From Blastocystis sp. Blastoise (lineage: Eukaryota; Protista; Bigyra: Opalinata): a stretch of DNA of 64,000 nt. Every line of letters starts with the position of its first letter. The first letter of the stretch is position 1. The stretch lies in contig JBBPEB010000020.1 in the NCBI GenBank assembly GCA_039096225.1, positions 372,001-436,000 of the forward strand, in the 5' to 3' direction. A model generated the notes under the pieces. It ran no database searches and was not told the DNA's origin. It worked only from the letters and a program-made list of their open reading frames with translations. Below are positions 4,082-30,491 of this stretch, one piece after another. A program made the translations under genes and the position numbers.

Positions 4082-4149
4082 CCTTAGACTGAATATGGTT
4101 AGTAGCAATCATTAATAGATTGTTATCAGGTTCAATTCCTGATCTAGGG
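4082..4149 (+). ncRNA. tRNA-like cloverleaf, copy 1 (non-canonical)
   Basis: CCTTAGA/TCTAGGG 7-bp stem; CTGA-ATATGG-TTAG; TAGCAATC-ATTAATA-GATTGTTA; TCAGG-TTCAATT-CCTGA (B-box); T5 run ~14 nt downstream. Confidence 0.7.
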
Positions 4150-5899
4150 TCATATATTATACTTTTTATAAAAAAATTTAAATATTTTTCTCTATAGATA
4201 TTCTCATTCATTAGAACCAGTATGAAAGGGTATATTGAGTTTCATGTAATTAAATAAACTCTATACATTGCTAGTCGCTTTTCTATAATGTTTTTAGTTT
4301 ACTATATTCAACACACAACACATTCACAATTGCATTCACTTAGAATACCATATTCATTATTTTGATTTGCTATATATCCTATTGATCAATTCTACACACA
4401 AATAAAAAATAAATATTCATCAATAACATCTTGAAGTCTATAAACACGCAATGCATTATTAGTTTATACTCTTAAAAAGCATTTTAACTGTTTATATTAA
4501 CATGATTGACACTAAAAGTCATTTGTAACATTTATAAACCACTCTTGAGACTTTTAAAGAACCTTGACAAATCTACATTACCTAGAAAACTATTATAATT
4601 AACTTTAGTTTATATAGGTCATAATTAAATTTAAATTATTAACAGAATGTCAGAATAAATGCATTCTAACTCAACATATCACGGAGAAAAATTAATTCTG
4701 TTTGTAACTTCTCTAAAATTGAATTAATTAGTGAAATACGTATTCAAACTAATGTTGAATTTAAATTCAAACACACACAAACTCACCTTTTCTGACAGTT
4801 CTACACATTTAGGCAATCTAGTGACTATCACATAATCGACTAATTTTTGTTGTCTTCATCAAGTCTAACTATTTCCTCATGGCCGTAACCATTAATTTTA
4901 TTTTATTCAACACTCTATAAATAATTAATCAATTAACTAATTTTATTTACATAATTACATACTCCAACAACAACAACAAGACATCAGGAGTAATAATAAC
5001 GGTTTAAAGTATTTAAATTAAATAATAAATAATAAAAAGTAGAAATATTAAGATTTCAATAAAATTTAATAAGTTAATTTATAGTGAAGTTTCAATAATC
5101 ATATATAAAATATGATTTATTTCGTTTTTGTATGTTTTAAGTATATATTTATCTATATATAGGCCCTAGGAGTATAGTAGAGTACCTTCCAGTCTCCATT
5201 GGCAGATTGATCTGTTGTGCTATGTTCTCTTTCTCTATGGTGAGCTTGTCTGAGTGGTGTAAAGTGGTTGAGCTAGATGATCTGCTATTGTATTGTGGTT
5301 TAAATTGGATGATGTGACGTCACCATACAAAACTATTTCTTTAGGCTTTCTCACTGAGTAGCAATTGGTCGGTTATATTAACTGAGCGTGGCTTGATACT
5401 TTCAAAAAAAAAACTACTTAATTGGATAAACAGATTGGTCTTAAATTGCAGAGAAGCATGGATCTCTTCACTTAATCACTACCTATAACACTCAAATGCT
5501 TATAATTAGAGTTAGTTGGTATTAGTCATATTCAGATTCTAGATGTATATATTTTCTGCATTTATTTTCTTTATAATTATAATTATAATATTATATAGAT
5601 ATTTATATAGGTTATTATATAGTTATTAAGCCTAGTTCTTGTTCTTCTTGTCACTAACTTCTTGTTTTTTCTTATATATATATATATATATATATATATA
5701 TATAATTGACTTTTTTTATTTTGCTTATATATTATTATTTTCTTTATTATTAAGAATAAATTTTGTTCATATTTATTATTAGTTTTATTCAATATATTTA
5801 TTGACTTTGTTCTATTCTTCTCTTTTTTTATTCTTATATATATATATATATATATATATATATATATAGGCAAAACTTTTATATATTTGTTTTTCTTCA

Positions 5900-8100
5900 T
5901 TCTTATTTTCTCCTCTTGTCCTCTATTGGCCTTGTTCTCCTCTTCTCTCTTCCATTCATCTACTCTCTAGTTTCTACTCATTTTATATTCTTATACTCTT
6001 ATGTTATATAGAACAGTTATTGTTTTTCTTAATATTACTTTATAGTATGTTTTATTTCATGTTCTTCTATTCTATATTCTAGTTTTTCCTTCACTTTCTT
6101 CTTTCCTCCATTAATTATTACTGGTTCTTCTTCTCCTATCATTACCTACTCTCTTCATTTCCTTCTCTTTATCATGATCTTCTTCTTTTTCATTTCCTTC
6201 AACTCTTCCTTTTCCTATTCTTCTTCTCCATTTCCTTCTATATTATTACTTCTTTTTCTCCTCTTCTTCCAATTATACTTTCTTTATTTCTTATTCATTT
6301 TAATTATTCATCTACACATTGTTTCTATTTTCCTTCTTCTTCTATATATCCTTATTTTTTGTCTCCTTGTTCATTCCTTTCTCGTTCTTTTTCATCTATT
6401 TATCCTTCTTCTATTTATTTTAATTCTGAATCACCTTCTCTCTATCTCTTTCTGTTTCTTCTTCTTCTATTTAATCTTATTTTTCTTCTTCTCGTCTTCT
6501 TCTCTTTCTATACATTCTTCTCTGTATATATTTTTTTCTCTCTATCTCCTTCATCTGTATTTTCTCTTCTATTTATCCTTATTCTTATTCTACATTTTCT
6601 CCATATCATTCTCCTCCTATATCTTATGTATCTCCTTTATCTCTTTATTCTTCATCTATATCTTCTATTTATCATTCTTCTTCTATATATTCTTATTCAC
6701 TTTTTTTCTTCTATATATTCATATTCTCTTTATTCTTCTTTATCCTCGTCTATATTTCTTTCTTCAATATTATCGGCATCTTCTTCTTCTTCTATATCTT
6801 GTATATCTTCTATTTATCATTATTTTCCAACATATTCTTCTGTGGTACTTCTTCTTTTTTTGTATTTTTCCTTCTTTTTTTATATCTTCATTAATCTTTC
6901 TTCTTCGTCTTTATATTATTATTCTCCTTATTCTTCTTTATTTTCTTCTTCTTCTTCTACTTGTTTTTGTTATTCTTTATTCTTCTCTTTCTTCTTCTTC
7001 TTCTTCGATATATTCTTCTTTTCTTTCTTTTACTTATTCTCCTTTTCAGTTGTCTTCTCTTCATATATCCTTCTTCTTCTCTGTCTCTTTCTCTCTCTAT
7101 CTCATTCTACTTCTTTTTTCTATTCATCTTTCTTCTCCTCCTTTTCTTCATTTCATCCTTCTCCTTCTCCTTCTTCTATTCATCTTTCTCCTCCTTCTTC
7201 TTCTCCTCCTTCTTCTTCTATTTATCTTTCTTCTTCTTTAATTTATCTTTCTTCTTCTTCTAATTATCTTTCTTCTTCTTCTATTCATCTTTCTTCTTCT
7301 ATTCATCTTTCTCTCCTTATTCTATTAATCTTTCTTCTTCTTCTTCTTCTTCTTATCCTCCTTCTATTCATTTCTTCCTTCTCCTCCTCCTCCTCCTTCT
7401 TCTTCTTCTTCTATTTATCCTTCATCTCCTTCTTTCGCTTCTCTATCTCCTTCTTCTTCTTCTTCTTCTTATTCTACATATCATTTTTCCACTTTTTCTA
7501 TATCTTTCGCTTCTTCACTTTCTATATCTTCTGTATATCATTCCTCTCCTTCTTCTTCAACATCTTCTTTTTATATCTTATAATTCTTTCCTCTTTATAT
7601 TATTCTCATTTCATTCCATTTCATCTATTTTTCTATATCTCATTATTTTCAATATTTATTATACAGAATATCATTTATATTTAATGTTTTTCACTTTCAT
7701 TATCTTTTCCATATACATTATAGTCTTATTTGCTTTTCCTACATCTTCACTTGTTCTTCTTATGTGTATTCTCCTCATATTTTTATTTCTTTTCTAATAG
7801 ATTTTCCTTTATAGTTCTTCTAACTCTTCTCTACATTCTTTCTTCTTTATCTCTTATACTTGACTTTCTAGTCTCCATCTTTCTTTTTTTTTATCTTCTT
7901 ATCTTATTATCTATATGTACTTCCTCTTCCTCTAATTCTTCTTTATACATATAAATTCTTTTCGCTCTTTATCCTTCTAATCAATTCCTTCTTCTTCTCA
8001 TTTAATTAATATTTTTCTTCTTCTTTATTTATTTTCCCTTATTCTCCTTATTCTTGTCTTCAATTTTTTTCTATATTCAATTCTTATTTTTCATTATCTT
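5900..8100 (-). pseudogene. Decayed Glu/Lys/Arg-rich coiled-coil protein coding fragment
   Basis: Minus strand reads EEER*IEEER*LEEEER*IKEEER*IEEE around 7200-7310; stops fall where CGA/CAA are expected. The plus-strand F/S/L ORFs are its antisense. Confidence 0.65.
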
Positions 8101-29458: not shown

Positions 29459-30425
29459 TGCTATAATTTTTGAATCTTCTAAAAAATTGTTTTAAAATCT
29501 TATTATAATATATCCTAACCACTCTCTGACTATCTCTATTGTATACTTAAACAATTAATATTGAAATTAGTTATAAATCAATAATAAATAGTATAAATAA
29601 GTAAGGTGTAACTTAAAGGTGTTCTATGAAATTACCGTAAATATTAAACTATTTTCCTCTTATAAATCATTATTTCACTATATTATTCACATTTTTTAAA
29701 TTATCTCCTTAATAATACTTATATATATATATTTTATGGTTTTTACATATACTTGAGAGTTTTTAATTTAATAAAAAATGTTTAATTTAATCTGATTCTT
29801 TATAGTAAACTCAAAACAACTCAAAATATACTTTCTGCTATTGATTTTTGACTTATATTTTCCTACTAAAATATTCAAATAATCATAAATTGAACGAATA
29901 AATTGTGGGAAAAATAATCGTTATTTTTCTGGTTTAAAAATATAGCCAGAACCGACAAAATGAATTAGCAGAATATTTGCTGCCCAACTTGAATGGGTAA
30001 AGTCTATTTAAAAGTTACTATTTTGAGTTATTTATGATTAAAATCATTATTTGAGACGAATATAAAAATACTAACTTTTTAAATAATGTTTTAGCTGTCA
30101 AAGTGACAATGAATGTTGATTTTGTTATACTTAAAACTTCAAAATTCTTTTAAAAAGTATTAAAATAAGTTTAAATTATTATATTATGCTTATTAAAATG
30201 AATTTTATGAATTAAAAATACTTGAGAGTTCTTCACATTGGTACTCATTTCTAAAGTTGTTTACTTTAAAAACTCAAAAAATGCTTAAAACAGTTGTTTA
30301 ATTATTAATAAATACAAAATATATTTTTAAAATAATAAATAATATATAATAATACAAATTTCGTTTTTAGTATCTAAGAAATTCTTTTAGTTTTTTAAAT
30401 ATTATTAAAAAGAATCTAAAAGATA

Positions 30426-30491
30426 CTTATATCAGGAATTGAACCTGATTACAATCATTTACTGATTATAACTCTCCATATAGAGTATAAG
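30426..30491 (-). ncRNA. tRNA-like cloverleaf, copy 3
   Basis: CTTATA/TATAAG; CTCT-ATATGG-AGAG; TTATAATC-AGTAAAT-GATTGTAA; TCAGG-TTCAATT-CCTGA; T5 run ~14 nt downstream. Confidence 0.7.

Follow-up and report, generated by a model that had tools for sequence, protein, structure and literature searches.

A covarying tRNA-like cloverleaf as a conserved antisense component of a Helitron family in Blastocystis sp. "Blastoise"

The genome of the gut protist Blastocystis sp. "Blastoise" holds a family of about 240-335 tRNA-derived cloverleaf modules that lie on mobile DNA, and the commonest type among them (type A) is built into the elements of a non-autonomous Helitron family. Three copies, one of them of type A, stand in the 64-kb stretch analysed here, hereafter the window (C28:372001-436000; the assembly, which was the genome searched throughout, comprises 33.3 Mb in 34 contigs and has about 20% G+C). 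Between Helitron subfamilies, conservation of the module equals that of the terminal hairpin of the element itself. The tortoise isolates, "Blastoise" included, were described by Lind et al. (Genome Res 2025, PMC12129017), with isolates spanning 26.0-33.3 Mb and 21-23% G+C; neither "tRNA" nor "Helitron" occurs in the text of that paper, and we found no paper in which Blastocystis, Helitrons and tRNA-like elements are brought together. New here is that a canonical Helitron family carries, as a near-constant component on its antisense strand, a cloverleaf that covaries and does not decode.

A covarying cloverleaf in a Helitron family

A preliminary description of the window had placed three tRNA-like copies in it, at 4082-4149 (copy 1, plus strand), 8384-8449 (copy 2, plus strand) and 30426-30491 (copy 3, minus strand), all folding into one cloverleaf. 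The placement is correct, and the shared cloverleaf is the minimum-energy fold of each copy (-19.3, -18.7 and -17.9 kcal/mol for copies 1, 2 and 3 with ViennaRNA; z-scores from these energies of -3.0, -2.9 and -3.1). The opposite strands fold worse, at -10.8, -17.0 and -12.5 kcal/mol respectively, the gap being clear for copies 1 and 3. The architecture that had been claimed was found as well. Copy 1 has an acceptor helix of 7 bp; in copies 2 and 3 the outermost position is occupied by T-T, and the helix has 6 bp. The D stem has 4 bp and its loop contains GG, the third stem has 6-8 bp, and the T-arm reads TCAGG-TTCAAYT-CCTGA. In all three, the acceptor runs directly into the D stem without an 8-9 linker, and the variable loop is reduced to 1-3 nt. 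Copy 1 (W1 type) is built from the acceptor CCTTAGA/TCTAGGG, the D stem CTGA/TTAG, the third stem AGCAATC/GATTGTT and the invariant T-arm. Copy 2 (W2 type) has the acceptor CTTATG/CATAAG, the D stem CTCT/AGAG with an 8-nt D loop, the third stem GCTATC/GATAGC and the T-loop TTCAACT. Copy 3, supported by both the covariance-model match and the fold, is the Helitron-borne type A copy. A T5 run was also noted about 14 nt beyond copies 1 and 3, and it is present at the 3' side of both.

These copies belong to a large family. A search for the 17-nt T-arm found 239 occurrences in the genome, against none for the reversed-pattern control; with up to two mismatches the count rises to 335. A covariance model made from 11 copies recovered all three window copies, with exactly three matches in the window (88.7, 83.2 and 88.2 bits for copies 1, 2 and 3), and returned at least 150 matches at 86-99 bits from the genome, so that the search advised in the preliminary description bore out the dispersed family proposed there. 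Metagenome contigs scanned with the family patterns gave no match.

The pairing is maintained by compensatory changes, as had been proposed. Over 12 distinct copies, 97.8% of the pair cells form standard pairs, and both sides have changed in 9 of the 23 pairs, namely four in the acceptor, two in the D stem and three in the third stem; all five pairs of the T-stem are invariant. None of 500 shuffles matched the observed pairing and double changes, and when the partners were slid by 1-3 columns only 38-48% of the cells remained paired. Wobble pairs on the tRNA-sense strand comprise 12 G·U against a single A·C, and this excess identifies the tRNA-sense strand as the one that folds.

The same T-arm is found with quite unlike acceptors (CCTTAGA/TCTAAGG, ACTCAAG/CTTGAGT, ACTTAAG/CTTAAGT and TTTAAG/CTTAAA, among 80-nt pattern matches), and in one subtype the entire third arm is an (AT)n hairpin of variable length; the rare subtypes are known from the 80-nt strings printed by the pattern searches, as are the nuclear tRNA genes discussed below. 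The W1 type numbers about 33 genome copies, including variants in which a G·U pair has become a Watson-Crick pair. About 20 copies are of the W2 type, with compensatory variants (GCTATC/GATAGC to ACTATC/GATAGT) and decayed ones, among them a three-copy decayed form.

Copy 3 lies antisense in a 3'-terminal Helitron segment of about 737 bp (29988-30724, plus strand), a multi-copy unit with sharp boundaries: at least 25 copies, 83-95% identical, all cover the query from 3489 to 4225/4234. The 3' terminus (30672-30724, plus strand) consists of a GC-rich hairpin, GCCGCGGTCC...GGACCTGCGGC, then GTGACC and CTAG-3', followed by a host T. The hairpin, GCCGCGGTCC(loop)GGACCTGCGGC, stands 6 nt before CTAG and is the sole 40-nt stretch of at least 65% G+C in the window. 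On the Helitron strand the element ends in ...GTGACCCTAG, a CTRR-3' end. Its 5' boundary on the same strand, host A|TCATTACTATTATAAAGC... (TCATTAC...), is sharp and common to 11 copies, which begin with the 5'-TC of TCATTACTAT... at one boundary. Insertion occurs between a host A and a host T: the T follows the 3' end in at least 20 distinct flanks, and the A precedes the 5' TC. No target-site duplication was seen in the Helitron flanks that were read, the search for one not being systematic. The 5' end of copy 3 (30491) is 232 nt from the CTAG ending at 30723/30724, in agreement with the closeness to a Helitron 3' end that had been noted for it.

The arrangement around copy 3 is general. The same 3' end has 109 genome occurrences at up to one mismatch. 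When coordinate lists were compared manually for contigs C1-C13, 44 of 47 such ends had a cloverleaf 210-725 nt inside the element, always in one relative orientation, antisense to the Helitron, and three ends had no module. Read in the tRNA sense, at least 20 independent loci of type A show a variable host flank, then A|CTAGGGTCACGCC as a hairpin, an AT-rich spacer and the cloverleaf; in letters, the host flank ends in A and is followed by CTAGGGTCACGCCGCAGGTCC...GGACCGCGGCTGCA, an AT-rich microsatellite spacer and the cloverleaf. Hence the proposal that the tRNA-like copies are borne by a transposon holds for type A, which sits at a near-constant place in the 3' region of a canonical non-autonomous Helitron.

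The family exists in several forms. A 6.55-kb form carries two modules, type A near its 3' end and a second one, type B, which lies 4.3 kb away towards the interior, at 2.0 kb from the 5' end; type B is on the same strand as type A and has a CT-rich tract before it. A 3.2-kb form carries type A only and occurs in head-to-tail tandem arrays, and there are also 737-bp 3' fragments. A credible open reading frame (ORF) was found in none of these forms. As to the Rep/helicase on which such elements would depend, the autonomous Helitron present in the genome has termini different from those of the A/B family. The 5' end of another member lies in the window at 63208-64000 (plus strand), as A|TCATTACTAT... 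inside (TA)n; this element continues past the window, with an antisense tRNA-like copy at C28:437632-437705 and the hairpin at C28:437913-437933.

Two other hosts were considered for the modules and rejected. Same-strand pairs 4.3 kb apart had suggested long terminal repeats, but the paired modules are not alike, and the termini are those of a Helitron. Intron-rich genes were dismissed as well, the long ORFs in or near the units being of low complexity (poly-N, F/L/S-rich) or without a Pfam match.

Short contigs (C6, C7, C10 and C11, 105-173 kb) and contig ends consist largely of nested or head-to-tail arrays of module-bearing Helitrons, with periods of 3.17 kb and 6.84 kb, and may be Helitron-derived satellite or centromere-like regions. 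At C1:132621-132995 two type A modules stand head-to-head, 340 nt apart, with one Helitron 3' end 20 nt upstream of the cloverleaf of the other, indicating a nested insertion into the AT-rich spacer.

Nine type A modules, taken from subfamilies with 72-88% identity in their flanks, were aligned, and conservation was measured as the mean pairwise column identity. It shows two peaks, the terminal hairpin (0.96-0.98) and the cloverleaf (0.91-1.0), with values of 0.65-0.85 elsewhere. The T-arm and the D-loop GG are nearly invariant, and what few differences the subfamilies show inside the cloverleaf compensate each other, such as A-U to U-A at columns 28 and 48 of the alignment. Covarying stems, together with a conservation equal to that of the terminal hairpin, speak for the structural selection that had been proposed. 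The overall proposal of a transposon-borne tRNA mimic under structural selection is supported by the covariation and by the Helitron placement of type A; copies 1 and 2 lie in a large non-coding repeat, described below.

Possible functions of the module

What could such a module do? The explanation that we favour, tentatively and on the strength of sequence, is that it encodes a tRNA-like RNA made by RNA polymerase III (Pol III), which the Helitron carrying it needs in cis. The module would be transcribed from the tRNA-sense strand, most likely by Pol III through an internal promoter: the B box, GGTTCAATTCC, is that of the real tRNA genes of this genome, and the D arm, TCTATATGG, resembles an A box. 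The transcript would fold into a tRNA-like elbow, to be trimmed by RNase P and RNase Z. Such an RNA fits the pattern of conservation, because the acceptor, the T-arm, the D-loop GG, the T-loop TTCAAYT and the B box are kept while the anticodon arm is free to vary. The module would serve the element in cis, not as a passenger gene, and this need in cis is suggested by the strong selection that acts on each copy.

Several observations weigh against this explanation. Type A has no T run of four or more within about 90 nt downstream, so that a Pol III transcript would carry a long trailer, and in DNA of 80% A+T the T runs and TATA-like sequences are in any case uninformative. The match to the A box is partial. 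The outer pairs of the T-stem, which lie beyond the B box, are also invariant, and a promoter alone is therefore insufficient to explain the conservation. One W2 subfamily of seven copies has a C·A mismatch on the sense strand. A small RNA acting in trans would not by itself account for selection on each copy. Finally, the autonomous Helitron of the window contains no tRNA-like module according to the covariance model, and the module is thus not generally required by Helitrons.

A rather unlikely alternative is that the module is a processing signal in cis, present in longer Pol II or read-in transcripts and cut out by RNase P/Z, in the manner of mascRNA or of tRNA punctuation; it would set transcript ends at the Helitron edge or after the long pyrimidine-rich tract. 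The kept features (acceptor helix, T-arm and GG elbow) are precisely those which RNase P and RNase Z read, and the anticodon arm varies. Moreover, types B and W2 always follow a CT-rich tract of about 2 kb and an AT-rich stretch, and type A lies just inside the edge of the element, where read-in transcripts would arrive. However, the elements have no ORFs and hence no evident transcript to mature, and no A-rich tract or triple-helix motif of the MALAT1 kind was recognised upstream when the sequences were inspected by eye. MALAT1 and NEAT1 carry tRNA-like cloverleaves at their 3' ends (mascRNA and MEN-beta), with an elbow that RNase P/Z recognise. They resemble the present module in having a cloverleaf with a degenerate anticodon arm that is not read by the translation machinery, but they are single-copy features of long non-coding RNAs that follow an A-rich tract and a triple helix, whereas here the module is multi-copy and belongs to a transposon.

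We give about the same low weight to a structure of single-stranded DNA, a four-way junction near the 3' end that would aid rolling-circle termination or act like the single-strand origins of plasmids. The near-constant position by the termination hairpin and the fixed orientation agree with this idea, as do the form without linkers, which suits a DNA junction, and a conservation equal to that of the hairpin, as for a cis signal of transposition. On the other hand, the strand that keeps the pairing (12 G·T, one A·C) is the complement of the TC...CTAG strand, and it is the latter that Helitrons, according to work on Helraiser, reportedly peel off and transfer. Furthermore, the D-loop GG and the T-loop TTCAAYT are tertiary-contact features of tRNA for which we know of no meaning in DNA, and types B, W1 and W2 are internal, far from any terminus.

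The comparison with the Helitron 3' hairpin is instructive here. Both are structured elements near the 3' end, and in the A/B family they are equally conserved. A simple GC-rich stem makes up the hairpin, which stands about 10 nt from CTAG on the Helitron strand; the cloverleaf lies 210-725 nt inside, is AT-rich and four-armed, and keeps its pairing on the opposite strand. To our knowledge, the only cis signals described for Helitrons are the short termini and the 3' hairpin, and both termination and the copying of the excised strand are poorly understood. A second structured element with tRNA-type tertiary signatures and a fixed orientation is therefore a testable candidate for an additional cis or RNA component.

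A slightly less probable proposal makes the cloverleaf a working part of rolling-circle transposition itself, and it can be put in two ways. In the first, the module would be a portable Pol III gene whose RNA, complementary to the transferred strand, primes second-strand synthesis on the excised circle. In the second, a Pol III/TFIIIC complex met head-on would slow unwinding just before the termination hairpin. If true, a eukaryotic DNA transposon would for the first time be known to use a structured RNA or a Pol III component in its mechanism.

It is improbable that the module is only a DNA site for TFIIIC or Pol III with no function as RNA, serving as a chromatin barrier or as a head-on obstacle to the Rep-helicase or the replication fork before the hairpin. 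The B box does not vary and matches that of the real tRNA genes exactly, the orientation is fixed and head-on to the 5'-to-3' unwinding of the Helitron, and the head-to-tail arrays show that termination sometimes fails in the A/B family. Yet a binding site leaves unexplained both the compensatory changes in the acceptor, D and third stems and the strand bias of the G·U pairs.

Just as improbable, in our judgement, is a neutral passenger, that is, a tRNA or pseudogene captured once and amplified, whose conservation would reflect recent copying of a few masters. Helitrons capture host sequence, many of the copies are near-identical, and some W2 third stems have decayed. But the module is 91-100% conserved between subfamilies with flanks of only 72-82% identity, its changes are compensatory, subtypes with wholly different acceptors still pair, and no parent tRNA was found in the organelle genome. 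If it is kept under selection, the module would plainly show a DNA transposon preserving a part derived from a tRNA, which for the Arabidopsis cluster discussed below was no more than a speculation.

The heads of tRNA-derived short interspersed elements (SINEs) are among the closest likenesses, being tRNA-derived modules with an intact B box on a non-autonomous element present in hundreds of copies. Here, however, the carrier is no short retroposon tailed by poly(A) or LINE-like sequence. It is a rolling-circle DNA transposon bounded by TC...CTAG and provided with a 3' hairpin, and the 737-bp unit with copy 3 ends in this hairpin and CTAG. The module is internal, antisense and near the 3' end instead of forming a 5' head, and all four stems keep covarying, which those of decaying SINE heads do not.

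In Arabidopsis thaliana, a tRNA-Cys cluster on chromosome 5 overlaps annotated Helitrons (PMC10701932). As in Blastocystis, tRNA-type sequence lies near putative Helitron 3' ends (CTAG) in tandem units. The Arabidopsis genes are canonical tRNA-Cys genes with RNA-seq signal for 11 of 13 unique transcripts, three Helitron-finding programs did not confirm a Helitron there, and both a connection with Helitrons and an involvement of the tRNA in termination were put forward only as speculation (PMC10701932). In contrast, the ends described here are canonical (n=109), and the module is non-decoding and dispersed over the genome.

Relation to tRNA genes

The modules are not recognised as tRNAs by the general model. 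The Rfam tRNA model RF00005, whose family threshold is 29 bits, had no match in the whole window at E values up to 1, nor did 151-nt stretches enclosing copy 1 and one type A copy give any at E values up to 10; for comparison, the true organelle tRNAs of the same genome score 55-75 bits with this model. ARAGORN calls copy 2 only, as a tRNA-Ile(aat) at 8381-8451, and none of the type A or B copies. The family shares with tRNAs the cloverleaf with a 7-bp acceptor stem, the D-loop GG and the T-loop TTCRANY. Its loops and linkers are different: the canonical 7-nt loop with U33 and a purine at 37, the two-nt linker and the variable loop of at least 4 nt are not found. The loop of the third arm has 5, 6 or 7 nt of variable sequence, or the whole arm is (AT)n, and because of this variation nothing resembling an anticodon is kept, in line with the unconserved anticodon loops reported in the preliminary description. 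That these are working, if unusual, decoding tRNA genes is hardly credible, since the ARAGORN call for copy 2 is set against the blank RF00005 searches, the uncalled types A and B, the variable or (AT)n loops, the missing 8-9 linker and the presence of canonical GC-rich nuclear tRNA genes in the same genome. About 300 such loci will confuse the annotation of tRNAs and repeats in AT-rich Blastocystis genomes.

The few canonical nuclear tRNA genes that we saw, tRNA-Gly(TCC) for example, are rich in G+C, possess the usual linkers and have T runs downstream; they and the family have only the B box, GGTTCAATTCC, in common. The organelle genome is represented by a 33.3-kb contig (C9) with an rRNA inverted repeat, 25 canonical tRNAs and nad5, nad7, nad11, rpl2 and rps3. 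An organelle origin was rejected: this contig and the family share just 11-13 nt of the T-loop, and its scores with the family model are 23 bits or less. No parent gene could be identified among the organelle tRNAs or the few nuclear tRNAs seen. The case that had been named as fatal to a structured family, one ordinary tRNA decaying at random, was thus not observed; no parent was found among the organelle tRNAs, the few nuclear tRNAs seen are built differently, and the module forms a peak of conservation.

Some observations concern the tRNA genes themselves. Directly after tRNA-Val in the organelle rRNA inverted repeat there is a cloverleaf that scores 23 bits with the family model (L010:1988-2059, L011:1200-1271); ARAGORN does not call it, and it may be an unannotated or degenerate organelle tRNA. 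Another contig, C12, has stretches identical to C9 (e.g. the regions of tRNA-Cys and tRNA-Glu) and is probably a second assembly of the organelle genome. A nuclear tRNA with a long variable arm, the loop CTTCAAA and the anticodon TCA, which reads UGA, was found at C5:69875-69954 and C14:272969-273048. It looks canonical and may be a selenocysteine or suppressor tRNA. Human Blastocystis isolates have been reported to be without canonical stop codons that tortoise isolates keep, hence the interest of this tRNA. As for rRNA, contig C27 contains an 18S rRNA gene of about 2.0 kb that repeats every 14.4-14.5 kb, which indicates a tandem rDNA array.

The large repeat and other elements of the window

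Copies 1 and 2 are held by a non-coding repeat of more than 9.8 kb that occupies positions 1-9761 (no strand assigned). It runs past the left edge of the window, as about 20 copies, 77-97% identical, all reach window position 1-3, and its right end adjoins (TTA)243, beside which stand three TGGGTATTTCTA subterminal repeats. No credible ORF was found in it. The two copies are on one strand, 4302 nt apart, and W1-W2 pairs at 4.0-4.35 kb recur on C4, C8 (twice), C10 and C13.

Our best guess, from sequence comparison, is that this repeat is a relative of the A/B Helitron. The two have a two-module layout in common, W1 and W2 in the one, A and B in the other. Copy 2 is preceded by a pyrimidine-rich (CTT/TTC) low-complexity tract of about 2 kb and then (AT)n (6170-8110, plus strand, GC skew -0.81), and type B likewise. 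The segment 3' of copy 2 (8713-9002, plus strand) has a weak homology, with 59-63% identity, to the segment 3' of types A and B. A weak colinearity with the B side of the A/B Helitron extends over the stretch of the repeat that starts at the CT-rich tract and ends about 600 nt past W2; sensitive blastn between the two gives AT-rich noise, and the comparison was limited to the colinear hits near W2 and B. There is no hairpin-CTRR end near W1 or W2, and no clear TC in the expected orientation at the right end (~9761).

The autonomous Helitron of the window (11166-18914, minus strand) is an insertion independent of this neighbouring repeat. It was considered as the host of copy 2 and rejected, its 3' end at 11166 being 2.7 kb away and its copies elsewhere not adjoining copies of the repeat. 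Its 1597-aa Rep/Pif1-helicase ORF (11446-16239) contains the domains Helitron_like_N, PIF1 and Pif1_2B; a second ORF, of 359 aa, spans 16362-17441, and the element ends in the 3' hairpin GCATCGGC-GAA-GCCGATGC, then CACCCG and CTAG|T. It appears intact, and with at least 14 copies at 93-99% identity it was probably active recently.

Other elements of the window were seen in passing. A Harbinger-type DDE_Tnp_4 ORF of 299 aa (33019-33918, plus strand) and an 816-aa ORF with a weak DUF4218 match (48287-50737, minus strand) have no tRNA-like module nearby. An 83-bp tandem repeat in 26 copies, with 92% match, lies at 19178-21365, close to the autonomous Helitron on its 5' side. The autonomous family has another 3' end at 27170-27371 (plus strand), with the same hairpin, a CTAG ending at 27234 and then (TAA)45. 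Together with the end of the large repeat at about 9761, beside (TTA)243, this end gives the impression that the elements sit in, or seed, TAA/TTA microsatellites.

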